From positions 186,001-250,000 of the forward strand of contig JAANOX010000099.1 of assembly GCA_020184695.1 (NCBI GenBank): 64,000 nucleotides of DNA, read 5' to 3'. Of this stretch, positions 7,360-60,300 are shown piece after piece. The position numbers and the translations under genes were made by a program. The stretch comes from Histomonas meleagridis 2922-C6/04-290x (Eukaryota; Protista; Parabasalia). The first letter of the stretch is position 1. The number at the start of each line of letters is the position of its first letter. The notes beneath the pieces were generated by a model. The model made no database searches. It saw only the letters and a program-made list of their open reading frames with translations, and was not told the DNA's origin.

Positions 7360-7809
7360 TTATTGAACCTTTTCACATGCACCTCCTGCAGCTTTGATCT
7401 TTCTTTCAGCAGATTGTGAGAAATCTTTGGCACGAACAATTAATGGAATTTGTGGGAGTTCACCACGACCAACAACTTTGAAATATCCATTGGCAACGCA
7501 ATCAATGACTGGAACTGCATCGCCTTGTTTTTTAGAAGCAGCTTGGTTGCGAACTTCTTCAGGAACTAATGTCCAAAGTTTGTCAATATTGATGATTGGT
7601 TCCCATTCGCGGCACTTGAATACATGAAGACGGCGCATACCAACCTTACCGAAGTATCCTGGGTGATAACGATCGAACCAAGTTCTTTGATGATGTTGAC
7701 CACCAGCATTACCGCAACCTCCTGGTGACTTCCTGTGCTTTCCAACACGACCGTAACCCATTGATTCTTGGCCACGAAGCTTCCTTGACTTCTTGAAACG
7801 AGTTGGCAT
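7360..7809 (-). CDS. RPL27A: 60S ribosomal protein L27a (uL15)
   Basis: [13 protein letters not shown]...[21 protein letters not shown]...[11 protein letters not shown]. Confidence 0.97.
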
Positions 7810-7815
7810 CCCGAA

Positions 7816-7833
7816 AAAGGACGGCCAAACCGC
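7816..7833 (-). promoter_or_regulatory. M3 plus M5 core promoter of RPL27A
   Basis: Minus strand reads GCGGTTTGGCCGTCCTTT, ending 6 nt before the ATG; the layout matches RPL10A. Confidence 0.7.
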
Positions 7834-7870
7834 CGATAACCTCCGAAGCCATTATAATAAAATTAATTTT

Positions 7871-10800
7871 ATGAATGATAATCAAGTTTTTCACGATGTT
7901 AATGCAAATTTCTCTAAAAAATCAAAAAAGAACTCAAAAGATTCTGGTGTATATTTAACATTACTTACTTCACTTCAAAAAATCATATTTAATTTAACTG
8001 ATGAAAATTTTGATTTAGCTATTGAACAAACAATAAAATTATTTGATAAGAAATTTCCATATTCATTTAATGTTACTATAAGTAATTTGATATATTTATC
8101 ATTTTATTCACATAAGAATTCATATTTAAGTGATTTATATATCAAATATTTAGAAAAAATTCAAACAAAAGAAGAAATAGAACAAAGTTATCTAAAAGTT
8201 ATTACAATTTTTATTGATTATATATGTGGAATTAAATCACAAGAATCATATTATTTAATTGAGAAAATGATTGAACAAAAAATAATTGAAACAAATATTA
8301 TCAAAAATATAAAAACAAATTATTTCATCCATCATAGATCAAAAAAGTATCCACATATTTATTCCAAAAATGATCCAATATATATTTTTCTTATGAAAAA
8401 CTATAAAGAACTTTCAAAGAATGATTGGGAAATTCATAAACAATTAATTCAAGAAGGACAAAATCCAAATGAAATTGCGAAAATAATTCGAAATGATGAA
8501 ATAGAAAAACTTCAAGAAATATCATCACAAAATGATTTTTATTTTAACCAAAGAATTAAACCATCACTTTATGAAAGGTGTTCATTTATTAATCAAGAAA
8601 ATGTTACATTAATTGATTATGCAGCATTTTTTTCTGCTGTTAAATGCTTTAAATATTTACTTATGAATGATTCTAAAATAGATAACACAGGTAAATATGC
8701 AATTGCAGGTGGAAATTTAGAAATTATTCATTTATGTGAACAAAATCATATCTCTTTTCAAAATGCATATGAAACAGCAATTATATTTCATCAAAATGAT
8801 ATCTTTAAATATCTTTATGAAAATAAAATAGAAGAATACGCTCAACAAAAAGAAAATGATTTAAAATTTCTTTGCATTAAATATGGAAACTATGAACTTC
8901 TATCATTTTTAGAAGACATTTCCAGTAAAGGATTTAATGATTCTATCTTCAAAGAGTCAGCAAGAACTGGTAACTTGTATCTTGTTAAACATTTTCTACC
9001 AAGAAATATCATTACAGTGGATCTTTTATGTAAATCTTCGGAATCAAAAAATTTTGAACTTGTTCAGTATATTCTTAAACAGAAAAGAAGTAATATTAAT
9101 GCTAAAGACTTAAATTTATTTTGTTTTATTTTCGTTTTAATAATTTTATGTTTCATAATAATATTAGGAAAATATTTAAATCATTTTCAACAGCACTTAT
9201 GTATGCAACTCAAAATGGTAATACAAGAACAGTTAAATTACTTCTTGAACAAAAGGGAATTAATATTAATGACAGAAATAATATTTGATTTGTTAAAAGG
9301 AAATTTGGAAATAATTTTTGGAAATTTTTTCAAATATTTAAAACAGCACTTATATTGGCATCTGAAAAACGATATACAGAAATAGTTGAATTACTTATTG
9401 AGAAAGAGGGAAAAGATGTTACAATTAATGATAGTTATTTGTTATGATTAATGCTTCCCTGTTAAATTTAATATTGTTAAATTTGTTTTGGGAATTATTA
9501 AAATTATTTGAAAATGCACTAATGAAAGCATCGCGTTATGGTTATATTGATATAATTCAATTACTTTTTAAACAAGGGGAAATTGATATCAATTCAAAGG
9601 ATTTTTATATGTTATATTTAAAATTTAATTTATTTTATTGTTGTTTGATAATAAAATTTAAAAATTCTTCCATTTTTTTAGAACAGCGCTTTTTCATGCA
9701 TCTTCAAAATATCAGACAAAAGTAGTCAAATTACTTCTTGAACAAGAAGGAATTGATATTAATGCTAAAGATATTTATTTGTTTTATTTAATATTTATTT
9801 TAATAATTTTATATTTCAAAATAATAATTGGAAATTATTTAAATTATTTCTAACAGTATTAATATTAGCATCTAAAAAAAGTTATATTGAAATAGTTAAA
9901 TTACTTATTGAACAAGAAGGAATTGATATTAATGCTAAAGATATTTGCTTGTTTTATTTAATATTTATTTTAATAATTTTCTATTTCAAGATAATATTTG
10001 GAAATTATTTAAATTATTTTATACAGCACTTATTTGGGCATCTTATTACGGTAATACAGAAATAGTTAAATTACTTCTTGAACAAGAAGGAATTGATATT
10101 AATGCTAAAGATATTTATTTGTTTTATTTAATATTTATTTTAATAATTTTATATTTCAAAATGATATTTGGTAATTATTTAAATTATTTAAAACATCACT
10201 TATTTTAGCATCTGAAAATGGTCGTACAGAAATCGTTAAATTACTTCTTGAACAAGAAGGAATTGATATTAATGCTAAAGATATTTATTTGTTTTATATG
10301 AAATTTATTTTAATAATTTAATATTTCAAAATAATATTTGGAAATCATTTAAATTATTTTGGACAGCACTTATGTGGGCATCTTATAATGGTCATACAGA
10401 AATAGTTAAATTACTTCTTGAACAAGAAGGAATTGATATTAATGCTAAAGATATTTATTTGTTTTATTTAATATTTATTTTAATAATTTTATATTTCAAA
10501 ATAATATTTGGAAATTATTTAAATTATTTAATACAGCACTTATGTGGGCATCTAAATATGGTCATACAGAAATAGTTAAATTACTTCTTGAAAAAGAGAA
10601 TATTGATATTAATGCTAAAGATATTTATTTGTTTTATTTAAAATTTATATTTCAAAATAATATTTGGAAATTATTTAAATAATTTAATACAGCACTTATT
10701 TATGCATCTGATGAAGGTTATACAGAAATAGTTAAATTACTTCTTGAACAAGAAGGAATTGATATTAATGCTAAAGATAAAATTTATTTGTTTTATTTAA

Positions 10801-11236
10801 AATTTATTTTAATAATTTTATATTTCAAAATAATATTTGAAAATTATTGAAATTATTTGATACAGCACTTATGTGGGCATCTTATAAAGGTCATACAGAA
10901 ATCGTTCAATTACTTTTTGAACAAGAAGGAATTGATATTAATGCTAAAAATGAAATTTATTTTAATAATTTTATATTTCAAAATAATATTTGGAAATTAT
11001 TTAAATTATTTAGAACAGCACTTATTTTGGCATCTTCAGAAGGTCATACAGAAATAGTTAAATTACTTCTTGAACAAGAAGGAATTGATATTAATGCTAA
11101 AGATATTTATTTGTTTTATTTAGAATTTATATTTCAAAATAATATTTAAAAATCATTTAAATTATTTAATACAGCACTTATGCATGCATCTTCAAGAGGT
11201 CATACAGAAATAGTTAAATTACTCTTAGAAAAGTAA
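7871..11236 (+). CDS. Split ankyrin-repeat gene A: DUF3447-type N-terminal region plus 13 interrupted repeats
   Basis: Open 7871-9109, then repeat blocks starting at 9190, 9343, 9513, 9683, 9853, 10023, 10193, 10363, 10533, 10689, 10862, 11015 and 11171 (the first 12 are 90 nt; all stop-free). Thirteen spacers (8x80, 83, 2x66, 2x63 nt). The last block ends LLLEK-TAA(A). About 846 aa if the spacers are processed as modelled. Confidence 0.8.
9110..11236 (+). repeat. 170-bp-period tandem array (90-nt ankyrin block plus 80-nt spacer)
   Basis: Near-identical units, e.g. GAAATAGTTAAATTACTTCTTGAACAAGAAGGAATTGATATTAATGCTAAAGATATTTATTTGTTTTATT recurring every 170 nt. Confidence 0.97.
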
Positions 11237-11519
11237 AACATTTATCCATTATGTAAAGCTTTTTATTTCTTTCCCATGAAAATCAGATTTGGAACAATTA
11301 ATTGGTTTGTTAAAATAAACAAAGAATAAAATGATTATTAATAGAAAGGAATTTTAAAAAATATTTGAGACTTTTGCCTAATTTGTTATATTTTAAATTC
11401 TTCATAATTGTTTCCAAGGAAAAAATCGTGTGAGCTTGATGGATATGGTTCTGTGCCATACTATGCCCATCATTCGATCGGTAATAGTATTCAAAAAGTC
11501 GAAATTTGATTGGTTAATT

Positions 11520-17397: not shown

Positions 17398-19422
17398 ATG
17401 TCACACCCAAACAGAACAACAATTTTGAAGTACTTTATCAAACCTCATCATTTTGTTTTAAGAGCTTCAAAAACCCAAGACTTTATTCTTCTCATTTTTA
17501 TAAGTAAAATAGTTTTCACCTTTGTTTTTAATAAACATTTACAATTCCAGCAACAAAATCAAATTGAAAACCAATGTAATTTTGCGTCTACTAATACAAG
17601 TTCTTTATCACCATTTAATCATCTTTTTAACAACAAAAATTTCAACACATTTGATGATCAACAACCTGCTAACATTTTGGTAAAATCAAAAAAAACATGT
17701 TACCAAACATACCTTATTGATCTTATGCGATCAAAAAACATATTATTATCAACGCAAACAAAAAAAGAAATTTTCATTTTTTGGGCAAAAATTCATAAAT
17801 TCATTAAATTTTTTTCATTAAATGAAAGCAATTTTTCATTTTTTAGAAATGATAACATTTATATAGTTTCATTTATTGTGTTTTTGATTAAATTTCACTT
17901 ATCGAAAACTTTTTTGCGACATAAAAACATTAATTTGTTTTTAGTGTTTTTTGTTTTACTGTTCGCAAATGGTTTCTCAACTTTTGATAACTCAACTAAA
18001 ACACTTACTATTTCAAATTCAACAGATTATGATAATAGAATGTTATATAAAAATGAAACAATTCATGTTATTATTGGAGGTTCCATCACTGGAATTGGAG
18101 ATAATTGTTTTTATGAGTGGAATAATTTGGAAAGTATCAAAATGAATGAATCAATCACTTTAATTGGAAATTCTGCATTTTCATCATGTTCTAATTTGAG
18201 AATAGTTTTAATTGGAGAAAATGTAACAACAATTGGAATTTCTGTATTTTCATATTGCACATCATTAGTAAATATTACAATTCCAAACAAAGTAACAGAA
18301 ATTGGAAATTATGTATTTTCATCATGTTCTAATTTGAGAATAGTTTTTATTGGAGAAAATGTGGAAAGAATTGGAACTTATTTATTTTCATATTGCACAT
18401 CATTAATAAATATTACAATTCCAAACAAAGTAATAACAATTGGAGATTATGTATTTTCATCATGTTCTAATTTGATAATAGTTTTTATTGGAGAAAATGT
18501 GGAAAGAATTGGAACTTCTGCATTTTCATATTGCACATCATTAATAAATATTACAATTCCCAATAAAGTAACAGAAATTGGAAATTATGTATTTTCATCA
18601 TGTTCTAATTTGAGAATAGTTTTTATTGGAGAAAATGTGGAAAGAATTGGAACTTATGCATTTTCATATTGCACATCATTAGTAAATATTACAATTCCCA
18701 ATAAAGTAACAGGAATTGGAATTTCTTCATTTGAATTTTGTACCAACCTTCAAATGATTAAAGTTTCCAGCGAAAATGCAAATTATTGCAATTATAACGA
18801 AGATGGGATTTTATATAACAAAAACGTCACTAAAATCCCACCGACGCAATCGTTCACACGATCGAACACATACTCAAACACATTTACTCAGTCGAATACG
18901 TTCACTAAGTCGAATACATTCACTAAGACGAATACATTTACTCAGTCGAATACATTATTACCTTCGAATGTAACGCTGACACTTTCGTTTACGAATTCAT
19001 ATTCCATCACTGAAACTGTTACAATTTCTGGTACATATTCTTATTCATATGTTTTGACTTTAATTGGAGTTAGTAGTACATATGTCAGAACAGATTTAAT
19101 TTATTATGAATATATTGTGACTCGTTATTCGACGTTATATAGTTTTTATTCGAATTTCTTCACAATTATCGACGTCATAAATCCTGTTGGAAATGGTATT
19201 TCTCAAAAGGCTTTGATAGGTATTATCTGCGGCACAATAATTGCAGTTTTGCTGATTATGGGAATTATCATATTCCTTGTGAAGAAATCAAAGAAAAGTA
19301 ACAGCGAATCAACAGCGATAAAATTCGAAACTAAAAATTCAACTGGAAGCGATATGAGATCAGATGAAGTAAATCAGGAATATAATGAACTCGTGTTGGA
19401 AGACCAGGACCAATGGCTATAA
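17398..19422 (+). CDS. BspA-like (TpLRR) surface protein 1 with long N-terminal leader, S/T/N/F stalk, TM segment and cytoplasmic tail
   Basis: Four 46-aa units SCSNLRIVFIGENV..IG...FSYCTSL.NITIPNKVT, SNTFTQ repeats, TM ALIGIICGTIIAVLLIMGIIIFLV, tail LEDQDQWL. Confidence 0.9.
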   Translation: MSHPNRTTILKYFIKPHHFVLRASKTQDFILLIFISKIVFTFVFNKHLQFQQQNQIENQCNFASTNTSSLSPFNHLFNNKNFNTFDDQQPANILVKSKKTCYQTYLIDLMRSKNILLSTQTKKEIFIFWAKIHKFIKFFSLNESNFSFFRNDNIYIVSFIVFLIKFHLSKTFLRHKNINLFLVFFVLLFANGFSTFDNSTKTLTISNSTDYDNRMLYKNETIHVIIGGSITGIGDNCFYEWNNLESIKMNESITLIGNSAFSSCSNLRIVLIGENVTTIGISVFSYCTSLVNITIPNKVTEIGNYVFSSCSNLRIVFIGENVERIGTYLFSYCTSLINITIPNKVITIGDYVFSSCSNLIIVFIGENVERIGTSAFSYCTSLINITIPNKVTEIGNYVFSSCSNLRIVFIGENVERIGTYAFSYCTSLVNITIPNKVTGIGISSFEFCTNLQMIKVSSENANYCNYNEDGILYNKNVTKIPPTQSFTRSNTYSNTFTQSNTFTKSNTFTKTNTFTQSNTLLPSNVTLTLSFTNSYSITETVTISGTYSYSYVLTLIGVSSTYVRTDLIYYEYIVTRYSTLYSFYSNFFTIIDVINPVGNGISQKALIGIICGTIIAVLLIMGIIIFLVKKSKKSNSESTAIKFETKNSTGSDMRSDEVNQEYNELVLEDQDQWL

Positions 19423-21281: not shown

Positions 21282-23598
21282 ATGTCATTTCAAACCAGAA
21301 CGAACATTTTGAAACACACGAATAAAACATCATATCTTGCTACAAGGACATCGCTTTCCCATACCTTCTTCTATGTTATCACTCTAAGTAAAACTATTTT
21401 CAATATTATTTGTAATTATCATTTAAATTTTCAATATCAACTACACCAAATCAAAAAAGGGCAGATCCTATCGCCTCTTAGGAACATGCTTTTGTCATTT
21501 AATCATACTTCCTCCAAAAAATTCAACAGTTTGATTTATGATTATCATCAATCTTTAAATTTTCATAACAAATTATATTTCCCTTTAATTTTTTTAACAA
21601 ATTGTTCTTTTTATTTCAACCAAGCATATGCCCATTCATTACCTTTTCATTCTCATTTATCAAATCATAAAATTTTCAAATCTCAAATATTTGATTTTAT
21701 TTTTAATATTATTTTAAAAGAAAACAATTTTTGTATCTTTAAAATCAATGTCATTTATTTGATTTTATCTTTTATCTTTTTGCTTTTATATAATTTTTGT
21801 TCAATTACATCTTTTTTACTATATAAATTCCATAAAATACATCGAAATGAAAATTTTTGTTTGATTTTTCTTTTTACATTTTTCACAAAATGTTTCTCAA
21901 CTTTTGATAATTCAACTAAAACACTTACTATTTCAAATTCAACAGATTATGATAATAGAATGTTATATAAAAATGAAACAATTCATGTTATTATTGGAGG
22001 TTCCATCACTGGAATTGGAGATAATTGTTTTTATGAGTGGAATAATTTGGAAAGTATCAAAAATGAATGAATCAATCACTTTAATTGGAAATTCTGCATT
22101 TTCATCATGTTCTAATTTGAGAATAGTTTTTATTGGAGAAAATGTAACAACAATTGGAATTTCTGTATTTTCATATTGCACATCATTAGTAAATATTACA
22201 ATTCCAAACAAAGTAACAGACATTAGAATTTATGCATTTTATTCATGTTCTAATTTGATAATAGTTTTTATTGGAGAAAATGTAACAACAATTGGAACTT
22301 CTGTATTTTCATATTGCACATCATTAGTAAATATTACAATTCCAAACAAAGTAACAGAAATTGGAAATTATGTATTTTCATCATGTTCTAATTTGAGAAT
22401 AGTTTTTATTGGAGAAAATGTGGAAAGAATTGGAACTTATGCATTTTCATATTGCACATCATTAGTAAATATTACAATTCCCAATAAAGTAACAGGAATT
22501 GGAATTTCTTCATTTGAATTTTGTACCAACCTTCAAATGATTAAAGTTTCCAGCGAAAACGCAAATTATTGCAATTATAACGAAGATGGGATTTTATATA
22601 ACAAAAACGTCACTAAAATTATATGTTATCCATGCGGGAAAACAAACGAAACATATACATTCCCAACAAATGTCAGTGTAATTGATATTAATGCATTCTG
22701 TAATTGTATTTCATTAAGGAACATTGAAATTCCATGCAATATAACGTCAGTTGGAAGCAAAGCATTTGCATCATGCTGCAATCTCACATGTATTTTTTAT
22801 TATGGCGAAACAGTCCCAACGAATACATCGAATGTATTTGATAACAACAATTTAATCAGAAGTGTCATGACAATCGATTCATATAACGGCCAAACATTCT
22901 GCGGTATAAAAGTCAGTAAAGGAAAAGTCATTGATGAATGTCTCCCACCGACGCAATCGTTCACACGATCGAACACATACTCAAACACATTTACTCAGTC
23001 GAATACGTTCACTAAGTCGAATACATTCACTAAGACGAATACACTAACAAAGTCATATGAAATTTCATTTGTTGTTTCGAATTCATTTACTTTTTCATAT
23101 TCGAATGGTATAACATTAACGAATACAATAACATTAACACAATCATTATCTATTACGCAAACAATAAAAATTTATAATTCGACGTATTCGAATTCATTTT
23201 CTGTTTCTATTTTTAATTCGGCATTAACTTATGTTTTGAGTGAATTTATTTATTACGAATATACTGTTGTTGTATATTCGACTTATTACATATATTATAG
23301 TAATTTCTTTACAATTATATATCAAAATGAAAATATTAATGATGATAATAGAAACACAATTATAATTATAAGTGTTTGCGTTGCAGTTGTCGTAATTGTA
23401 ATAATTGCAATACTTATCATAGTTTTGATGCGAATTCATAATAAGAAACAAATAAGTAATGAACAAGAAGCAAAAAGTTTCGAAGAAAATCAAAATGAAA
23501 AAGAAAATACATTTGCAATGGGAACATCAACGAATAATATTGATGAAGATCCATTTGCTGATGATTTCAAAAAAGAAAAATTCATTAATCATATTTAA
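21282..23598 (+). CDS. BspA-like surface protein 2, with one +1 frameshift at the A5 run 22059-22063
   Basis: ORFs 21282..22070 and 21904..23598 join if one A is removed (the paralogue has A4 at 18139-18142). Three 46-aa LRR units, cap, stalk, TM segment, tail DEDPFADDF. Confidence 0.8.
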
Positions 23599-29736: not shown

Positions 29737-30051
29737 TTACCAACGGCGAGGTGGTCCTGGAGGTGGCGGTGGATGGAAGAAAGGTCCAGGTGGTGGTGGA
29801 GGTGGAGGTGGATGGAAGAAAGGTCCAGGTGGTGGTGGAGGTGGGTGATGATAAACTGGTGGAGGAGGTGGTGGCGGATGATGATAAACTGGTGGAGGAG
29901 GTGGTGGTGGTGGATGATGATAAACTGGAGGAGGTGGAGGAGGAGGACGGAACCCTGGATGTGGTGGAGGTGGATGATGGAATGGAGGAGGTCCTGGTGG
30001 GTGGTGATGAGGTGGTCCTGGGTGATGATGTGGAGGTCCTGGTGGAGGCAT
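29737..30051 (-). CDS. Small Pro/His-rich repetitive protein
   Basis: MPPPGPPHHH...(PPPPPPPVYHH)x3 (PPPPPPGPFFH)x2...GPPRRW; a GC-rich island in AT-rich flanks; ATG at 30051. Confidence 0.7.
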   Translation of the reverse strand: MPPPGPPHHHPGPPHHHPPGPPPFHHPPPPHPGFRPPPPPPPVYHHPPPPPPPPVYHHPPPPPPPVYHHPPPPPPGPFFHPPPPPPPPGPFFHPPPPPGPPRRW

Positions 30052-36312: not shown

Positions 36313-39300
36313 TTAGTTATTTTTATCAGCTATTTCAATTCCTCCATGTTCAATTAGTATTTTTACTATTTCGTTGTGTCCTGTTTCAGAAGCAATCATA
36401 AGTGCTGTTTCAAAAATTATCAACAATTTTCATGCATTATTGTGAAATATTATATTATTAAAACAAATTTTAAATATAATAAATTAATATCTAATATATT
36501 AATATCAATTCCTTTTTGTTCAACAAGCAATTTAACGATATTAACATGCCCATTATAAGATGCGCAAATTAATGCAGTCCAAAATTGCTTAAACAATTTC
36601 CAAATATTATTTTTTAATTCCAAAGTATTTAAATAAAAATTAAACAGAATACGTAAACATAATCAACGGCATTAATATCGATTCCTTTTTGTTGGATTAA
36701 TAATTTAACTATTTCTGTATAACCTTCTTCAGATGCAATCATAAGTGCAGTCCAAAAATATTTAAACAATTTCCAAATATTATTTCAAAATTCCAAATAA
36801 TTAAAATAAATTACATATGAAATAAAGTAAATATCTTTAGAATTGATATCAATTTCTGTTTGTTCAAGAAGTAATCTAACTATTTCGATTTTACAATTTG
36901 AAGAAGCACAAATTAGTGCTGTTTGAATTAATTTATATTAATTCCGAATTTTTTTATAATATTTTAAATTACCAAATAAAAAATCAAACAAAACAAATAA
37001 AAATCTATAGCATTGATATCAATTCCTTTTTGTTCAAGAAGTAATTTAACTGTTTCTATATTACCATCATATGAAGCATAAATTAATGCATTCCAATAAC
37101 TTTGGAAAATATTCCAAATATTATTTTGTAATTTCAAATTATTTAAATAAAATTTAAATAAACAAAAACAACATCTCTATCATTAATATTAATTCCTTCA
37201 TTTTCCAGAAGTAACTTAACTATTTCAGTATGATTTTTTTCAGATGCTTTCATAAGTGCTGTTTGAATTAACATGAATTAATTCCAAATGATATTATAAT
37301 ATTTCAAATTATTAAATTAAACATTAAATTAAAGTAATAAATGTTTTTCGCATTAATATCAATTCCTTCTTGTGCAAGAAGTAATTTAACTATCTCTGTA
37401 AAGCCATTATATGATGCATAAATTAGTGAGCTCCAATTTATTTAAAAAATATTCCAAATATTATTTTGTAATTTCAAATTATTTCTATAAAATTTAAATA
37501 AAACAAGTTAACATCTCTAATGTTAATATCAATTTTATTTTCAAGAAGTAACTTAACTATTATCGTATGATTTCTTTCAGATGCTTTTATAAGTGCAGTT
37601 TGAAGTAGTTTAAATTATTTCCAAATGTTATTATTATATTTCAAATTATTACATGAAAAATCAATTAAATCATGTAAACATCTATAGCATTGATGTCAAT
37701 TGTTTTTTGTTTAAGTAGTATTTCAACTATTTCTGTTTTACCGCTTGAAGATGCAAACATAAGTGCTGTATAAAATAATTTGAATAATTTCCATAAATTT
37801 GTTTGAAATAGCAAAGTATTTTCTGAAAATTTTTGTGACAGAAATAAATTTCTTTAGAATTAACTTCAATTTTTTCTTGTAAAAGAAGCATTTGAACTAT
37901 GTCTTTATGACCATTATCAGATGCAAACATAAGTGCTGTTCTAAATATTTTATATAATTTCCAAATATTATATTTTAATGTCAAATTATTTAAATAAAGT
38001 TTAAATAAGATAACTAATTATCTTTCGCATTAATATCAATTCCTTCTTGTTCAAGAAGTAATTTAACAGTTTCTGTATGACCATTTTCTGCTGCCAAAAT
38101 CAAACTTGTTTTAAATAATTTTAATAATCTCCAAAAATTATTTTGAAATATCAAATTATTAAATGAAAAATCAAATCAATCAAATATATGTCTTTAACAT
38201 TGATATCTATTCCGTTTTGTTCAAGAAGTAATTTTACTATTTCTGTGTATCCCTTTTCAGATGCTAAAATAAGAGCTGTGTTAAACAATTTGAGTAATTT
38301 CCAAACATTATTTTAAAACAAAAAATTATTGAAATTAATTTTATAATAATTAAATAAACATTTCTTGCATTGAAATCAATACCTTTTTTGTCAAGAAGTA
38401 ATTTAACTATTTCTATATATCCCTTTTCTGAAGCCAAAATGAGTGCTGTATCAAATAATTTAAATAATTCCCAAATATTATTTTGAAACATTAAATAAAA
38501 GAATCTAATTTTGATAAATATCAATATATATTTTTGATATTAACATCATTTCCTTTATGTTGGAGAAGTAATTTAACGATTTCTGTATTTCCATTTTGAA
38601 TTGCATGAAAACAAATTGTATTAAATATTACAAATAATTTCCATATTTTATTTCAAAACATTAAAATATTGTATTAAACAATGGGAAAAATTAACAAATA
38701 TTTTTGATATTAATATCAATTCTTTCTTGTTCAAGAAGGATTTTAACTATTTCGATGTGACCTTTTTTAGATGCCTTAATAAGTGCTGTTTGAAATAGTT
38801 CAAATAGTCTTCAAATATAATTTTGAAATATTAAATGGTTAAAACAAATATTAAACTAAATTAAAAAATATCTTTTGCATTGACATCAATTCCTTCATGT
38901 TTAAGAAGTATTTTAACTATTTCTATGTTTCCTTTAGAAGATACCCAAATAAGTGCTGTTTGAAACAACATAAATGAATTCCAAACATTATTTTGGAACT
39001 TCAAATTATAGAAACTTATATTAAATAATATAAATATATATCTTTTGAATTGACATCAATATCTTTTTGTTCAAGAAGCAATTTAACTATTTCTGAATTG
39101 CTTGTATAAGATGCACAAATAAGTGCTGTACTAAATAATTTGAATGATTTCCAATTATTACAATGAAACTTTAAGTTATGAAAATCAATTTTAATATAAA
39201 TAAACAAACGTTTTTAGCATTAATATCGATTCCTTCTTGTTTAAGAAGTAATTTAATTATTTCCATATGGACACAATCAGCTGCACAATTAAAAGGAGTA

Positions 39301-39549
39301 TTAAATAATTTGTATAATTTCCAAATATTATTTTGAAATAGAAAATTAATATAACAAATATAAAACACAACAAATAAAAATCTTTAGGATTATTATCAAT
39401 TTCTTCTTGTTCAAAAAATAAATTAAATATATCATTTTGATGATATTGAGATGCAATTATAAGTGCTGTATTAAATAATTAAAACAATTTCCAAATAATG
39501 TTTTGAATCACCAGATTATTAAAACAAATATCAAATAAAACAAATAAAT
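36313..39549 (-). repeat. Diverged 170-bp-period array of gene B
   Basis: AAGTGC(T/A)GT (plus-strand image of the TAL codons) and TTCCAAA recur at 170-nt intervals despite heavy sequence divergence. Confidence 0.95.
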
Positions 39550-40728
39550 ATCTTTAGCATTGATATCAATTCCATTTTGATTTAAAATGTATTGGATCAG
39601 TTCAATATTTCCCGATTTTACCGAAAAAATCAAAATATTTTTTGGAATTTGATATTCTTCAAGAAAATATTTAACAAGAAATATATTACCTATTTTAGCT
39701 GCGATATTAATAATGGAATCGTTGATTTCCATTCCTTCTTTTTGCAAAAAGGAAAAAATTTCATAATTATGATGCAAAATGCATTCAATACCTAATTCTT
39801 CTAAATTCTCAATATCAACAAATTTATTTTCATAAATATATTTCAAGATATCATTCCGATGAAATTCAATTGCTGTTTCATATGGTCTTTCAAACAATGT
39901 ATGACTTTGTTCACATAAATGAATGATTTCTTCATTTCCACCTGCAACAGCATATTTTCCTGTATTAATTAAATTTGTCCCATTCATAAGCAAATATTTA
40001 AAACATTTAACTGATCCAAAAAATGCTGCATAATCAATTAATGTAACACCTCTTTTGTTAATAAATGAATATCTTTCATAAAGTGATGGTTTAATTGTTT
40101 GATTAAAATCAAATTTTGTTTGTGATGATATTTCTTGAAGTTTTTCGATTTCATCATTTCGAATTATTTTCGCAATTTCATTCGGATTAACTCCTTCTTT
40201 AATTAATTTTTTATATAGTTTCCAATTATCTTGTGAAAGTTCTTCGCGACTTTCTTTGAAATCTTTACGTAATAAAATTTTGTTGTTTGCTTCTTTAAAA
40301 TTTTTATATAAAATGTAATGAAAAAAATATTTTTCGTTTTGACTTTCAAGCACTTTGGGCTTTAATACATTACGTTCAATCATAACTTCAAGGAGATAAT
40401 GTGATTCTTGTGATAATTTCCCGAGAAGAAAATGTGTAAATACAGAAAATATTTTGGATTTTATTTTATGTTTTTCTTCGAATATTTCAATTTCTTTCAT
40501 AAAATTAAAATATTTATTAAAATTATTATTCTGTAAGATAAATGATGAATATATTATTTGGCTAATAAGTAAGTTAAAAGAATATGCATAATTTTCATTA
40601 AACATATTAATTATTGAAAGAAATGATTGATTAGTGTTCTCTTCACTTAAATCAAGTATTATTTTCTGTAAAAATTGTAATTTTTCGAATCTATTGCCTT
40701 GATTTGATAAGTTTTCGCATTTTTCCAT
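36313..40728 (-). CDS. Split ankyrin-repeat gene B: DUF3447-type N-terminal region plus 19 interrupted repeats
   Basis: Open 40728-39550. Repeat blocks start (minus strand) at 39469, 39299, 39129, 38959, 38789, 38619, 38449, 38279, 38109, 37939, 37769, 37599, 37432, 37262, 37092, 36922, 36751, 36578 and 36408; all are stop-free (90 nt, one of 87; the last ends ADKNN-TAA). Spacers: 17x80, 81, 83 nt. About 1039 aa if processed as modelled. Confidence 0.8.
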
Positions 40729-40788: not shown

Positions 40789-42972
40789 ATGTCAACTAAA
40801 GAAAATGAAAACGATAAAACGTTTTTATTTCAAGATTTACAAGAGCTAGATGATATAATCTCAAATTTAAAAGAAGATAACATTGAATCAATAGTTGAAT
40901 CATCCTTTAATTTTTATGATCAAAATTTTCCATATTCATTTAATAACATTATTTCACAATTAGTTTATTCATATTTTGTTTCTCAGATGAAAGATGTTAA
41001 TATTTATCTTAATTACATAAAAGAAATTGATAAAAAAGAAGAAAATTCAAAGAATTTTCAAGGAATAATTGAATGTTTTTGTAGGTTTCTTCTTAATCTT
41101 GAAACTCATGAATCATATTATATACTTGAACATATGGTTGAACAAGAATTAATTAATCCAAAAGTAATAAAAAACAAAGAAACAGAATACTTTTCACATC
41201 ACAAGTCGCAAACAGAAATTAATAACTTAAAAGAAAAAACGATATTTAGTGGATATTTCTTTTCAAACATTCATGAACTTCAACGAAATGATTGGGAGCT
41301 TCATAAGCGATATCTTCATGAAGGGATAAATCCTCTTTCAATTTCTATTATTTTACGACATGATGATATTGATAAACTTCAACAAGAAGTTAAAAATGAT
41401 TTTAATCAAACAATTAGTCCATCATTATATGAACGATGTTCTTTTATTAACAAACTTAATGTTTCACTTGTTGATTATTGTGCTTTTTTTGGATCGATTA
41501 AATGTTTTAAATATTTAATAACTAAAGGCGCAACATTAAATAATACTGGGAAATTTGCAGTTGCAGGAGGAAACATAGAAATCATTAAAATATGTGAGGA
41601 AAATAATTCATCTTTTGTTGGTGCATATGAAGCAGCAATTGAGTTTCATCGAAATGAATTATTTCATTATTTTTATGAAAGGAAAATAATTGAAAATGTT
41701 GATAAAACAAAACTTGGAATAAAATGTATAGAATGTGGTAACTTTAAAATTTTATCATTTTTATTAAACGATGATATGAATGTCGATGAAAATGTTATGT
41801 TAGAATCAGCAATAATTGGAAATTTATATGTGACAAAACAATTTTTGGCTGATAATGAAATTCCAAATAGAATTTTGGTTAATTCTGTGATCTCTGGAAA
41901 TTTTGAACTTGTACAATGTTTCCTTGATATAACTGATATTGATGTAAATTTCAAAGATTTTTATTTGTTTTGTTTCCTGTTTGATTAAATGATTTTTTGT
42001 TTAGTTTTAACATTTGGAATTTAATTAAATTTTTCCAAACTGCACTTATGTATGCATGTTCTAAAAATTATCAGGAAATTGTTAAATTACTTCTTGAACA
42101 AAAAGGAATTGATATTAATATGAAAGAAGTTTTTTCCAACTTGTTTGAAGGAGGTGTTTTATTAATAAATTTGGAATTTATACAAATTATTTAGAAATGC
42201 TTTAATTTTGGCATCAGAAAGAGGAAATACAGAAATTGTTAAAATACTTCTCGAACAAGAAGGAATTGATATTACATTAAAAGGCATTTTTTTGGTTAAT
42301 TTTTTGTTTGTTTTAATGTTTTCGAGTTTGTTTTTAAATAATGAAATTTAATTAAATTACTTAAAACAGCTTATTTAACTGCATGTGAAAATGGTAGCCT
42401 TGAAATTGTAAAATTACTTTATGAAAGAGGTGGATTCGATATTACTGAGACTGATTTTAACTTAAATCAATTAAAATTTCTTTTTGTAAATTTTACGTTT
42501 CATAGTATTATTAGGAATTTATTCTTTTAGCTTTATAATGCACTTATGTTCGCTTGTTTAAGTGGTGATATTGAAACAGTAAAATTCATTATTAAAAATG
42601 GCGGAATTGATATTAATGCAATGAATTTTTATTTGTTTAATTTTATGTTTATTTATGTGTTTTTTGGTTTAGGTAAAATTTTTGGAGTTAAATTAAAAGT
42701 TATCAAACAGCATTAATGATTGCATGTAGAAATTGTACTGTTGATATAGTAAAATTGCTTCTTCAGCAAGAAGACATAAATATTAATATAAAAAATGTTT
42801 TTAATGTTTGTATAAAATTTATTAAATTGTTTTTTAGTTTCTAGATAATTTTTGATGTATTTTCGTTTCTCTTCAAACGGCTCTTACAATAGCTTCACAA
42901 TATGAAGCAAAAGAAATCGTTGAATTACTTCGTGAACATGCGAGGTTGAATAGAACATGCATTTTTTACTAA
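40789..42972 (+). CDS. Split ankyrin-repeat gene C: DUF3447-type N-terminal region plus 6 interrupted repeats
   Basis: Open 40789-41958; blocks at 42039, 42196, 42366, 42537, 42707 and 42877; spacers of 80, 67, 80, 81, 80 and 80 nt; ends TCIFY-TAA(A). About 595 aa if processed as modelled. Confidence 0.78.
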
Positions 42973-45993: not shown

Positions 45994-47244
45994 TCATTTG
46001 CTTACAACATCATTCTCATTATCAGACTTTAGGCCATAAAATGCGAACACGAAAACCATTATTTCATCTACTATATCTGAACAGAAATATTTTACTGCTG
46101 ATCTATCTGAATAATTTCCACTTGAGTCCATTGTTTCCGATACCCAGAACGATAGCCACGATAGAACGACAACCGATAGAAAAAGTGACTTAAAGAATTT
46201 TGATGTTTTTTGTTTTGGCATAATTAAGAAATTTATCCATTTAAATGCGGTGAGCCAAAAGATAATGATGTCCATGAATGATTTAGCTAATTTAGAGCCA
46301 TCTGTTTTTGATTCTTGATAAGAAAGATTTGTTGCAATATAACAAATAGAAATTAACAAAAAAAATATTAATCGAAAAATTGGATTTTTGATAATGACAG
46401 GTGAATAATAACTAAGAATAAAGAACCAGACCATCCTAATAATGGAAATGGAGACCGAATGTGAGATATTTATGAATGTCTTAAAACCATTTGATGGAAT
46501 ATATCCGGCCATTTTTTCGGTTAATGAAAGGCGACTACCACCTGAAATCACAAGGAAAATAACACAGTATTGAAGAAAATGTGGCTGAATGCCGAAAGCA
46601 AAAATAACAACAAAATAAAATAATTGAATTAGAAACATAGCAACTGTGAAAAATATAAAACAAAAAGTAGTGTAGTAATCAAACCGTTCGCTTCCAAAAG
46701 TAACAGCAAAGGAAGCAGTGTTACAAAGAGTAAGATCACCTGATAATCGACATGAAACTGAAAATGTATCAGATTTGATTGGAACCGAGTCAAAAATCGA
46801 AAAAGATGTGGTGTTGGTGATGGGAAAAGGTTTTGGTGAGTCAAGAAAGAGAACATAATTTGAACGATAAAAGAACGTTGAATTGCATGAGAAATATAAC
46901 TTTGATGTTATAAAACTCGTTTGTTCTGTAACAATTAGTTGTATTTTAACACTTGATTTTTCGTTTATTTCATTATTTGCATATGCATCAATATTGAAAA
47001 TTCTTAAACTTCTTGCTGATTCTGGCCTATTTGTTTCATAGCTTGAAAGTGTGTACGCATTTAAATCACAATACCATGAAATTGAGAATAGAATTATGAG
47101 TAATAGTGCAAATAATATAAATGAAATATATACATCTGAGAAAGACTTATCAGCAATATTTAAATAAGAAAATTTTCCTTCAAATTTAATCTGTAATGTT
47201 TCAAAACAGCTGGGTTGAGAATTTTCATTAATTTCTTCCTCCAT
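45994..47244 (-). CDS. Multi-pass membrane protein (possibly Wntless/TMEM181-like topology)
   Basis: N-terminal TM segment, ~130-aa luminal domain, then about 6-7 hydrophobic segments. The family call is by topology only. Confidence 0.6.
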   Translation of the reverse strand: MEEEINENSQPSCFETLQIKFEGKFSYLNIADKSFSDVYISFILFALLLIILFSISWYCDLNAYTLSSYETNRPESARSLRIFNIDAYANNEINEKSSVKIQLIVTEQTSFITSKLYFSCNSTFFYRSNYVLFLDSPKPFPITNTTSFSIFDSVPIKSDTFSVSCRLSGDLTLCNTASFAVTFGSERFDYYTTFCFIFFTVAMFLIQLFYFVVIFAFGIQPHFLQYCVIFLVISGGSRLSLTEKMAGYIPSNGFKTFINISHSVSISIIRMVWFFILSYYSPVIIKNPIFRLIFFLLISICYIATNLSYQESKTDGSKLAKSFMDIIIFWLTAFKWINFLIMPKQKTSKFFKSLFLSVVVLSWLSFWVSETMDSSGNYSDRSAVKYFCSDIVDEIMVFVFAFYGLKSDNENDVVSK

Positions 47245-57336: not shown

Positions 57337-60300
57337 ATGATTTTCTTGTTTCCTTGTCTTTCTTATGCATTATTTGAAATTATTATTGATAAAAAGATTC
57401 ACATTACAGCAGAAAGTTTGAATCAAGCATATTATGAAGCATTAAACATTGATAATTCGACAAACTTTTCAGATGTTGAAATCGTGAGTGGTGAAGTTAT
57501 TTATAATGAAATTGATTCTGACCAATGGGAAATGATTCTTAATTTTTCTGTTTCTGGAGATGTTAATATTAATTCCTATACATTATACCTAATTTTCTTG
57601 AATTTAATACATGTAGAAAACATTTACCTAGGTGTTACATTAGGAACTGATTCCGTTTTGAGTTTCATTTCTTGTAGAAATCTGAAATATATTTCTTTTG
57701 CAAATATTTTTCGAATTGAGCCATATATGTTTTTAAGGTATGTCAAATTGATAACAGTTGATCCTCCTACGTTGTCTTATGTTGGTGAAGGTGCTTTTCA
57801 AATGCGTGTAAGTTTTGAATCAAGCATATCATGAAGCATTAAACATTGATAATTCGACAAATTTTTCAGATGTTGAAATCGTTAATGGCGAATATATTTT
57901 CAATGAAGTCGATAATAATCAGTGGGAAATGATTCATAATCTTACTATTTCTAGTGATGTTAATTTTGATTCATATGACTTATTTTTGATTATCCCAATG
58001 TTAATACAAATAGAAAATATTTATTTGGGTATTACAATAAAACGTGATTCCTATTTGAATTTCGAGAATTTTGAGCATTTGAAATATATTTTTTTTGCAA
58101 ACATTTCCCAATTTAATACAAATATGTTTTCATATTGTAATAACCTGGTTACTGTTGAAGCTCCTACGTTGGCTTGTATTGGTGAGTATACGTTTCGAAT
58201 GTGTAAAAACCTTAAATCAATTTCATTTCCAAACGTTATAGAAATAGATGATTATGCATTTTCTTGCTGTGCAGCACTACAGAGTGTTAGTTTTCCTCAA
58301 CTCAAAAATTGTGGATCTAACGCTTTTGAATATTGTCCAATCACAACAATAAGTTTTCCATTTCTCAGCGAAGTTTCTCCATATATGTTTTCTTCATGCG
58401 GAAACATGGAAACTGCTTATTTACCAAATGTTACTACGATTGGTGCTTATGCTTTTTTGCATTGCTTCAGCTTAGTCGATGTAAACATCACAAAAGTTGA
58501 ATACATTTGTGAAGGAGCGTTCAATTATGCATACAATCTCAGAACCCTCGAATTACCTTCAATTATAAATGTTGGCGGACCTTTTCTTGTTGAATGTTCT
58601 AGGCTAATCAATATTTCTTTACCCAATGCAATTCGTGTTCCAGATTATATGTTTGCTAATTTATCAAACACGTTACATATATATATTCCAAAAGTTGTTT
58701 CTATTGGAAAACATTCATTTTGAACAATATTTTTTCGGTGAGAATACTTTTGAACAACTTAAAATCAAAGAAATTGATGATTACGCATTTTCAGGTTGTG
58801 TTTGTTCTGATGATTTAACATTTGATTATTGTGAATATGTTGGAAATTTTGCGTTTTGTAATACGCTTGTATTTGGTATTTCATTACCAAATCTTAAATC
58901 ATGTGGAAATTATTCGTTTTGTTCATTTGGTTATATTGAAGAATTATATTTTCCTAATCTTGAAAGTTGTGGTGATTATTCATTTTCATATAATTTTAAT
59001 TTGATTAATGTTACATTTCCTTCATTAATTACGATTGGAGATTCGCCATTTGAAGAATGTCCAAATTTAGAGATCATGAATTTACCAAATTTAGTTCAAG
59101 TAAATGATTATTTTATATCTAATGTTAATATGAATCATTTTGAATTTTTAAAATTAAAATATATTGGATCTAATTCATTTACGAAAGCATGTGACAAAGT
59201 TGAAAATATTAATTTTCCAGAAGTCATCTCAATTGGTGATTATTTTTTAAAAGATTGTCAACGAATTCGAAGTATTTCATTACCAAACGTAGAAAATATT
59301 GGTAAATATGCATTTTATAATTGTAGTAATTTAATTGAAGTTTCATTACCAAAATTAAAATATTTTGACTCAGAATTATTTTATTATTGTAATTTAATTG
59401 AAAATATTTCATTCCCAGCACTTGAAACTATTGGTAATAATTTTTTAATTCATTGTTATAATATTAAAATAATAAATTTACCAAAAGTTCGAAATATTAT
59501 TAATACAGCATTTTATAATTGTAGTTCGATTTATGAATTAAATTTAAATAATATCACGAATGTAAACGAAGGACCGATTGCTAAATATTGTAAGTCATTA
59601 AAAATCATTCACATGAATTCACTTGAAAGTTCACCAAGATTTTTTTATTTGCGCACATGCAAAGTCTTGAAGAAGTTTCATTAAGAAAAATTAAAAAAAT
59701 TACGAAAAGTTATTTATTTTTATAATTGCACAAATTTACGAAACATTAATATGCCAAACTTTGAAACAATGATTGAATCTGATTCAGGTTATGAATTTGC
59801 ATATTGTTCATCACTCGAAACAATAAAATTACCATCAATAGAAGAATTCTATGGTCGAAATACATTTCAGAATTGCACATCATTAGTAGCAATTAACTTT
59901 TCAAAAGCGATAAGAATTGTCGAATATATGTTTTTAAACTGTATTAATTTGATTTACATTGAAGTACCCAAAGTTACAATACTTTCATCATATTGTTTTA
60001 AAGATTGCATATCATTAAATGAAGCTGGATTTACAAGTGTTACCTTTTTTGAAGGCGATGGACATTTTTCAGGATGTGTTAACTTAGAAAAAATTTATCT
60101 TCAAAAGTTAAATGAAGTATCAAATAACGCGACAAAAATATTTGAGAATTGTAAACGCTTAACAATTATTTGGTTACCATCTTCTCCACCAAAAACATTT
60201 AATGAATATATATTTTCAACTATAAAAAAAGGAAACTTAAGTATTTGTTTGCCAGCTAAAGACGCTTATGAAAATTATGGAAACGATTGTGGTGTATCAA

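Follow-up and report, generated by a model that had tools for sequence, protein, structure and literature searches.

How is a protein read from a gene in which repeat after repeat is broken by a short AT-rich insert? The question is raised by three ankyrin-repeat paralogues, genes A, B and C, in a 64,000-nucleotide (nt) stretch of Histomonas meleagridis 2922-C6/04-290x DNA (contig JAANOX010000099.1 of assembly GCA_020184695.1, positions 186,001 to 250,000), which we call the window and number from its first letter. In these genes a coding block of 30 amino acids (aa), T-A-L ... N-A-K-D, alternates with an AT-rich spacer. We observed that the spacers are present in the DNA of two assemblies, that transcripts occur with and without them, and that 12 non-contiguous nt are left where a spacer has gone. 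Our analysis suggests that each spacer probably consists of three or four U-rich mini-introns of 17 nt (rarely 18 nt), lying in phase 0 and separated by exons of a single codon.

An ankyrin repeat is a 33-aa helix-turn-helix with an x-G-x-T-[AP]-L-H hairpin. The single 30-aa exons match the Pfam profile Ank (PF00023) with E-values of 1e-9 to 3e-10 over profile positions 4-32 of 33, and the positions that they lack are those of x-G-x. In the proposed layout of the canonical 80-nt spacer, four 17-nt units alternate with four codons, c1 to c4, which would encode the tip residues of the ankyrin beta-hairpin; c2 to c4 would supply x-G-x. The units would be transcribed, then excised at the RNA level, and the codons joined. 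A sequence-only reading of the same DNA had arrived at a different architecture, in which two excisions of about 51 and 17 nt keep the spacer's first and last codons and, between them, TTTGGA as a 6-nt micro-exon.

Twelve retained nucleotides at three gene A spacers

The evidence that carries the layout comes from gene A (7871..11236; all coordinates of this gene are on the plus strand). Contigs assembled from four runs (X1-X4), with 31-letter word graphs, were placed on window positions 7700-11400. The sequencing depth is 0-2.8 in the intergenic bin 7824-7947, compared with 6,000-43,000 in the adjacent gene for ribosomal protein L27a. Since the intergenic depth is close to zero beside a highly expressed gene, we take the runs to be RNA with little DNA, and the unspliced contigs among them to be pre-mRNA.

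Gene A has three spacers of unique sequence, S1 (9110..9189), S3 (9433..9512) and S4 (9603..9682), and at each of them contigs match both flanks with 0 mismatches but do not match across. The S1 contig (X2 record 9) aligns to 8807-9110 on the left and 9187-9260 on the right with 8 unaligned letters in between. At S3 (X4 record 26) the aligned parts are 9340-9433 and 9510-9602, again with 8 unaligned letters, and at S4 (X4 record 26 and X3 record 19) they are 9510-9602 and 9680-9749 with 9 unaligned letters. All three contigs have exactly 12 nt from the end of the D codon to the start of the T/N codon. A single intron is excluded because 8-9 of these 12 letters fit neither flank. The letters would be candidate micro-exons, very short exons kept between two removed segments, and their positions in the spacer were deduced from the boundary constraints.

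Unspliced contigs are also present, with a depth about one quarter to one half as great. Those of the unspliced form only start at 9081 (X1 record 2), span 9404-9539 and span 9573-9709, and each of their ends lies 30 nt from one of the positions 9111, 9434, 9603, 9509 and 9679, the distance to be expected when graphs of 31-letter words branch where the two forms diverge. This offset of 30 nt places the departure of the RNA from the genome exactly after 9110, 9433 and 9602, and its return at 9187, 9510 and 9680.

These six ends were compared with the layout of four 17-nt units. In S1 the units would be 9110-26, 9130-46, 9150-66 and 9170-86, leaving the codons TAT (9127-29), TAT (9147-49), GGA (9167-69) and TCA (9187-89) and the loop D-Y-Y-G-S-T-A-L. 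The predicted RNA is GCTAAAGAC-TAT-TAT-GGA-TCA-ACAGCACTT, that is GAC-TAT-TAT-GGA-TCA, in which the T of TAT matches 9110 by chance and 8 letters follow. For S3 the codons AAT (9450-52), AAT (9470-72), GGG (9490-92) and GAA (9510-12) give GAT-AAT-AAT-GGG-GAA and D-N-N-G-E-N-A-L; the A matches 9433 and 8 letters follow. For S4 the codons AAA (9620-22), GTT (9640-42), AAA (9660-62) and AGA (9680-82) give GAT-AAA-GTT-AAA-AGA and D-K-V-K-R-T-A-L, with no match past 9602 and then 9 letters. The layout agrees with all six boundary constraints, three left and three right ends, and has no free parameter.

If the retained positions are fixed relative to the spacer, the first retained base can lie only at spacer offset 17, 37 or 67, and two of these are predicted codon starts. 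Among 57,155 models with three retained blocks, 40 pass the constraints, and the sole one with equal excisions is (17,37,57). No single fixed 9-nt block passes the constraints from the RNA boundaries. One contiguous micro-exon of 8 or 9 nt was also considered: when all such candidates were listed against the boundaries of S1, S3 and S4, no common register was found.

Removal may differ between spacers. Run X1 gave S3 in the unspliced form only, while the spacer S2 had no unspliced branch in three runs. The second unit of S3 begins with the atypical GCTTCCC, and the efficiency of removal may depend on the sequence of the unit. On another gene A spacer, 10453-10532, the sole frequent difference in unspliced paralogue contigs is A>G at 10470, which would change the c1 codon AAT to GAT (N to D). 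It fits coding variation within the spacer.

The proposed 17-nt units and hairpin codons

The spacer 10453-10532 may serve as an example of how the layout is read. Mini-intron 1, ATTTATTTGTTTTATTT (10453..10469), would include the ATT that was formerly taken as the first retained codon. The single-codon exon c1, AAT (Asn, 10470..10472), would start at offset 17, one of the three first retained positions allowed. It would be followed by mini-intron 2, ATTTATTTTAATAATTT (10473..10489), and by c2, TAT (Tyr, 10490..10492), which is placed by the parse together with the boundary constraints. The final three bases of mini-intron 3, ATTTCAAAATAATATTT (10493..10509), are the TTT of the hexamer, and the second half of the hexamer would be c3, GGA (10510..10512), encoding the hairpin Gly, with offset 59 allowed as the last retained base. 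Mini-intron 4, AATTATTTAAATTATTT (10513..10529), is the same as the second, 17-nt excision of the sequence-only reading. The variable loop codon c4, AAT (10530..10532), is contiguous with the next exon, and it is at c4 that the RNA resumes in S1, S3 and S4. On balance, the example spacer probably reads D-N-Y-G-N-T-A-L instead of D-I-F-G-N-T-A-L.

A BLOSUM scan for the heads and tails of the repeat blocks located exactly 38 spacers in the window, 13 in gene A, 19 in gene B (minus strand) and 6 in gene C. Their lengths are 80 nt (29 spacers), 63 nt (2), 66 nt (2), 83 nt (2), 81 nt (2) and 67 nt (1). All 38 parse into units of 17 nt, or three times 18 nt, and sense codons, and removal in silico of 147 units yields three uninterrupted open reading frames (ORFs) of 849, 1040 and 596 aa, each from an ATG to a natural stop. 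In the best parse the 18-nt units lie at 36832-36815 (minus strand), 42129-42146 and 42476-42493 (both plus strand), where the frame is kept through the number of codons.

The length variants step by the unit: 63 is 80-17, 83 is 80+3 (one added codon) and 66 is 80-14. The two 63-nt spacers (9280-9342 and 10952-11014) are without exactly unit 1, which joins the first loop codon directly to the exon upstream, and this looks like the clean loss, or non-gain, of one mini-intron. In the 66-nt spacers (10623-10688 and 11105-11170) 14 nt of unit 2 are gone and an in-frame ATT remnant is left; judging from the parse, their loops would gain one residue (D-K-I-Y-G-N and D-R-I-Y-K-N).

The composition of the spacers has a period of 20 nt, with a unit consensus of R-T-T-T-(A)...A-T-T-T. 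The units are 57% T and 6% G, while the intervening codons are 49% A and 24% G, and unit columns vary less than codon columns. Among the 116 canonical units, the starts are AT, GT, AA or TT, and 84% end in TT.

Several elements of the earlier proposal are borne out. Its coordinates for the example spacer (D 10450-52, ATT 10453-55, TTTGGA 10507-12, 17 nt at 10513-29, AAT 10530-32, ACA 10533-35) are correct, and the stops that it cited are present (TAG 38016-38014 on the minus strand, TAA 10679-81). The triplet 23-21 nt ahead of the T/N codon encodes Gly in 31 of the 38 spacers and otherwise E, K or D. Within the 80-nt set, G occupies positions 1 and 2 of this triplet in 28 and 24 of 29 spacers, against 5.7% G in the remainder of the spacer, and the conserved Gly triplet is far above chance. 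The repeats belong to the ankyrin family (PF00023/PF12796), and the candidate micro-exon codons would supply the x-G-x. The first half of the hexamer is conserved too, as TTT precedes the triplet in 21 of the 29 80-nt spacers (22 with TTC). This TTT is, by its sequence context, the U-rich 3' end typical of every 17-nt unit and not a Phe codon, since TTT also ends the other three units: for unit classes 1 to 4 the counts are 20, 25, 21 and 20 of 29, and the hexamer's TTT is no more codon-like than the other unit ends.

The residues encoded by the candidate codons were compared with those of uninterrupted relatives. Loops such as D-N-Y-G-N, D-K-E-G-W, D-D-E-G-Q and N-K-N-G-D form a hydrophilic ankyrin hairpin, and in 27 of 29 spacers they fit the relatives better than the loops of two excisions do. 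The loop log-odds by register favour offset 17 for c1 and are not sharp for c2. The corresponding test with stop codons is non-discriminating, since in T-rich sequence the offsets 0 and +/-3 are all stop-free. Transcripts of paralogues, weak evidence in that their source genes are unidentified, have AAT, TAT, GAT, CAT or CTT before GGA and TTT in about 2 of 16. This spectrum agrees with that of c2 (TTT in 2 of 29) and not with the proportion of about three quarters expected if TTT were kept.

The same geometry of four 17-nt units recurs in metagenome relatives (L001 and L006) and at a further locus of H. meleagridis itself (L002). At these loci the unit sequences have diverged while the lengths are unchanged; 47% of the units start with GT and 41% with AT.

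Alternative readings and possible machinery

Our layout and the two-excision architecture share several points: spacers are removed from RNA, exactly 12 nt (4 codons) are kept between D and T-A-L, these survivors are non-contiguous with the flanks, and their retention gives back the D-x-x-G-x-T-A-L hairpin and a repeat of 34 aa. In either case the GGA triplet is very probably among the survivors. The two excisions restore the frame without stops in the 29 80-nt spacers, and they account for a hexamer conserved at a fixed distance. At S1 they would give GAC-TTA-TTA-GGA-TCA, and the genome match would run to 9112, 9436 and 9606 with 6, 5 and 5 unaligned letters at S1, S3 and S4, that is with divergence at 9113, 9437 and 9607. 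The contigs depart at 9111, 9434 and 9603, with 8, 8 and 9 unaligned letters, and the starts of the unspliced-only contigs confirm these positions. Because of these departures the base directly after the D codon cannot be a fixed retained position. The D-[I/V/F]-F-G loops are moreover hydrophobic. Contradicted at all three spacers, an architecture that keeps the first codon, excises 51 nt, keeps TTTGGA and excises 17 nt has almost no probability left, and its D-I-F-G-x peptides are probably wrong at both positions after D, where the best model gives D-[K/N/D]-x-G-x; the predicted junction sequences and peptides require correction before they are used in RNA or mass-spectrometry searches. A hybrid in which the TTTGGA exon is joined by the single upstream codon c2, with unequal excisions of 37, 14 and 17 nt, passes the RNA boundary constraints and is stop-free, being one of the 40 surviving block models. 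We consider it improbable: it leaves unexplained the 17-nt step between the 63- and 80-nt spacers, the equal RTTT...TTT ends of the four units and the 20-nt period, and it predicts TTT before GGA at the genomic frequency of about three quarters, which the paralogue transcripts do not have.

The spacer-free molecules could also stem from DNA, as retrocopies, a second haplotype or programmed DNA excision, a reading that gains some room from the fact that the RNA label of the runs is a guess. The negligible intergenic depth speaks for little DNA in the runs, both genome assemblies have the same context, and the flanks agree completely over 304+74 and 94+93+70 nt, which means that any copy would have to be very recent; a retrocopy would itself mirror spliced RNA. 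This origin is very improbable. Still harder to sustain is the idea of dead pseudogenes whose RNA gaps arise when reverse transcriptase jumps between U-rich direct repeats. The spacers are indeed low in complexity and rich in repeats, and the genes are unannotated. But such a jump cannot keep specific, differing codons at four positions, the 147 removals restore three full stop-free ORFs, the layout is conserved across diverged relatives and the same junction geometry recurs in four runs.

Returning to the layout of 17-nt units and single codons, several points weigh against it. The 40 surviving block models, with the hybrid retaining c2 and TTTGGA among them, are compatible with the same boundaries. 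No partly processed intermediates were found among the contigs, the unspliced contigs crossing whole spacers without a branch, and it is possible that the pattern reflects concerted removal of a whole spacer, which it fits as well as four independent events. The evidence consists of assembled contigs and not single reads, from runs whose label is a guess as said above, and the readable spacers are the three unique ones of gene A, the near-identical repeats being swamped by paralogues. The identity of the retained codons follows from boundaries and letter counts, not from the retained letters themselves. Finally, we know of no machinery for tandem 3-nt exons or for introns with [A/G/U]U...UU ends.

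We infer which 12 nt remain, that four separate cuts are made and what kind of machinery could make them. Judged by their sequence, the units lack what defines each of the intron classes tested. For U2-type introns (GT/GC...AG), 21% of the 116 canonical units start with GT and 0 end with AG, and no sliding to other dinucleotides is possible at boundaries beside GGA, CAA or TGG. U12-type introns have an ATATCC-like box at the 5' end and AC (or AG) at the 3' end; 47% of the units start with AT, as ATTT, and none ends with AC. The 17-18-nt units lack the branch-site/3' motif (of the ACTAAC..CAG kind) of trichomonad introns, T. vaginalis types A and B. Group I and group II introns have a ribozyme core of hundreds of nucleotides, and the units have 17 nt. 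For the bulge-helix-bulge or tRNA type, RNAalifold predicted 0 pairs on the 29 spacers, and a hand-picked 7-bp helix between units 2 and 3 had no covariation above shuffles (82/500). The spacer as one GT...ACAG intron was likewise rejected: the only GT frameshifts the typical spacer, and the GT-AG pair of S4 leaves 9 nt, compared with 12 in the RNA.

Since no unit ends with AG and there is no conserved fold, ordinary GT-AG spliceosomal recognition is unlikely. A strict unit length together with weak end motifs suggests a measuring step, and for this reason we rank first, tentatively and at less than an even chance, a length-measuring endonuclease acting with an RNA ligase in the manner of tRNA or HAC1 splicing. 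Ranked second, and rather unlikely in our view, is a specialised spliceosomal mode for ultra-short introns that approach the minimum size and have degenerate ends. GT or AT at the 5' end of 68% of the window units and of 88% at the other loci, the conserved A at position 14 of the unit (four bases before its 3' end), the U-richness and the narrow window of lengths would be in keeping with such a mode, as in lineages with tiny introns, and introns of 15-23 nt are known elsewhere (PMC12316389). Set against it are the 3' ends, with 0 of 116 units ending in AG or AC and no trichomonad 3' motif, the many boundaries that cannot be slid (for example between GGA and CAA/TGG) and the unprecedented tandem 3-nt exons. 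It is conceivable, if somewhat short of evenly likely, that Histomonas and close relatives have a dedicated, undescribed excision-ligation system, independent of GT-AG spliceosomal recognition, which measures length, cuts fixed U-rich segments of 17 nt, tolerates one-codon exons and has spread specifically to the hairpin tips of an ankyrin family that has expanded. If so, skipping any one codon would stay in frame, and the length and sequence of the loops could vary at the RNA level.

Several known systems invite comparison. Ultra-short spliceosomal introns are listed at 15 nt in Stentor, 18 nt in the Bigelowiella nucleomorph and 23-25 nt in T. vaginalis type B; the T. vaginalis introns are described there as having a 5' motif starting with GT and a branch-site motif by the 3' end, with a reported minimum of 23 nt (PMC12316389). 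The units resemble these introns in being very short, AT/U-rich, tightly fixed in length and removed from mRNA. But ultra-short spliceosomal introns retain GT...AG, in trichomonads with a fused branch-site/3' motif, whereas the units have [A/G/T]T...TT ends without AG, stand in tandem one codon apart and are confined to ankyrin loops. In animals and plants, micro-exons measure 3-30 nt (PMC13149111, PMC8831610). Like them, the codons here would be in frame, down to 3 nt, adding surface-loop residues and missed by annotation and aligners. Known micro-exons are single and lie between ordinary, usually long GT-AG introns, whereas here up to three 3-nt exons would lie in a row 17 nt apart, and each repeat across a gene family would show this pattern.

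The mechanism could be modelled on that of tRNA introns, archaeal bulge-helix-bulge introns and the HAC1/XBP1 introns, which are similarly short (about 14-26 nt), lack GT-AG and are processed by protein enzymes. These introns are defined by a conserved RNA fold, whereas the spacers have no consensus structure or covariation, and one-codon exons would leave no space for the flanking helices of a bulge-helix-bulge. Translational bypass elements (T4 gene 60 and the byps of Magnusiomyces mitochondria) are also short non-coding inserts in ORFs without intron signals, but they remain in the mRNA, while the inserts here are missing from the RNA itself. Taken separately, 3-nt micro-exons and 15-25-nt introns have precedents (PMC13149111, PMC12316389). 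Neither tandem one-codon exons spaced 17 nt apart nor introns with [A/G/T]T...TT ends turned up in our literature search. If the layout is right, the units would be among the shortest introns known, the codons between them would form the first tandem runs of one-codon exons, and the whole would point to an unknown route of mRNA cutting and joining in a eukaryote.

The gene family and other features of the window

Each of the three paralogues has a DUF3447/ankyrin N-terminal part followed by ankyrin repeats (Pfam). Gene A, with 13 interrupted loops, 48 mini-introns and a spliced ORF of 849 aa by the proposed layout, is identified by Pfam DUF3447 and Ank matches on its N-terminal ORF and Ank matches on single 30-aa exons, and it is transcribed. 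On the same basis of parsing, gene B (36313..40728, minus strand) would have 19 interrupted loops, 76 mini-introns and a spliced ORF of 1040 aa, and gene C (40789..42972, plus strand) 6 interrupted loops, 23 mini-introns and a spliced ORF of 596 aa. A search of the protein database with the unique gene A exon 8807-9109 gave no matches, and one with the N-terminal ORF of gene A gave paralogues and relatives only.

Two ORF products of the window are found, identical residue for residue, in assembly GCA_020186115.1 (WSYJ01000149.1), and one of them also in GCA_020184695.1. In the annotation of GCA_020186115.1 gene A (L005 10653-15242) is uncalled, leaving a gap from the L27a gene to its next neighbour. 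For another H. meleagridis paralogue (L002 6001-7521) the annotation stops at the in-frame stop of the first spacer. Because the published annotation misses or truncates these genes, a large ankyrin family of a poultry pathogen, variable in its surface loops, does not enter analyses of the proteome and of expression. On introns, the H. meleagridis genome paper states only that 5.2-5.7% of genes contain at most one, and it leaves the ankyrin genes unmentioned (PMC8529796). In a metagenome relative the split ankyrin gene is followed, about 2.5 kb downstream, by a gene for an IS1595-type DDE transposase (L006 4380-5279, L007 4622-5521).

Outside the ankyrin genes, a search of the window for isolated 17/18-nt units whose removal fuses long ORFs returned three weak, probably chance, candidates only. 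A 17-nt T-rich piece, CTTTTTGTTTTATATTT, is found at 46667 (minus strand), and its removal would join frames of 80 and 218 codons; it is probably due to chance, since the ORF around it, 45994-47244, is already open. Repeats of other kinds also occur in the window. A short tandem array at 29749-29947 is made of GGT/GGA-rich units of 33-39 nt and would be low-complexity coding sequence, Gly-rich or Pro-rich depending on the strand. Two long ORFs contain tandem 69/138-nt repeats (18162-18721 and 22083-22515) that by appearance resemble leucine-rich repeats (LRR) of BspA-like surface proteins, and similar LRR-like repeats are found in the ORF at 58626-59684.

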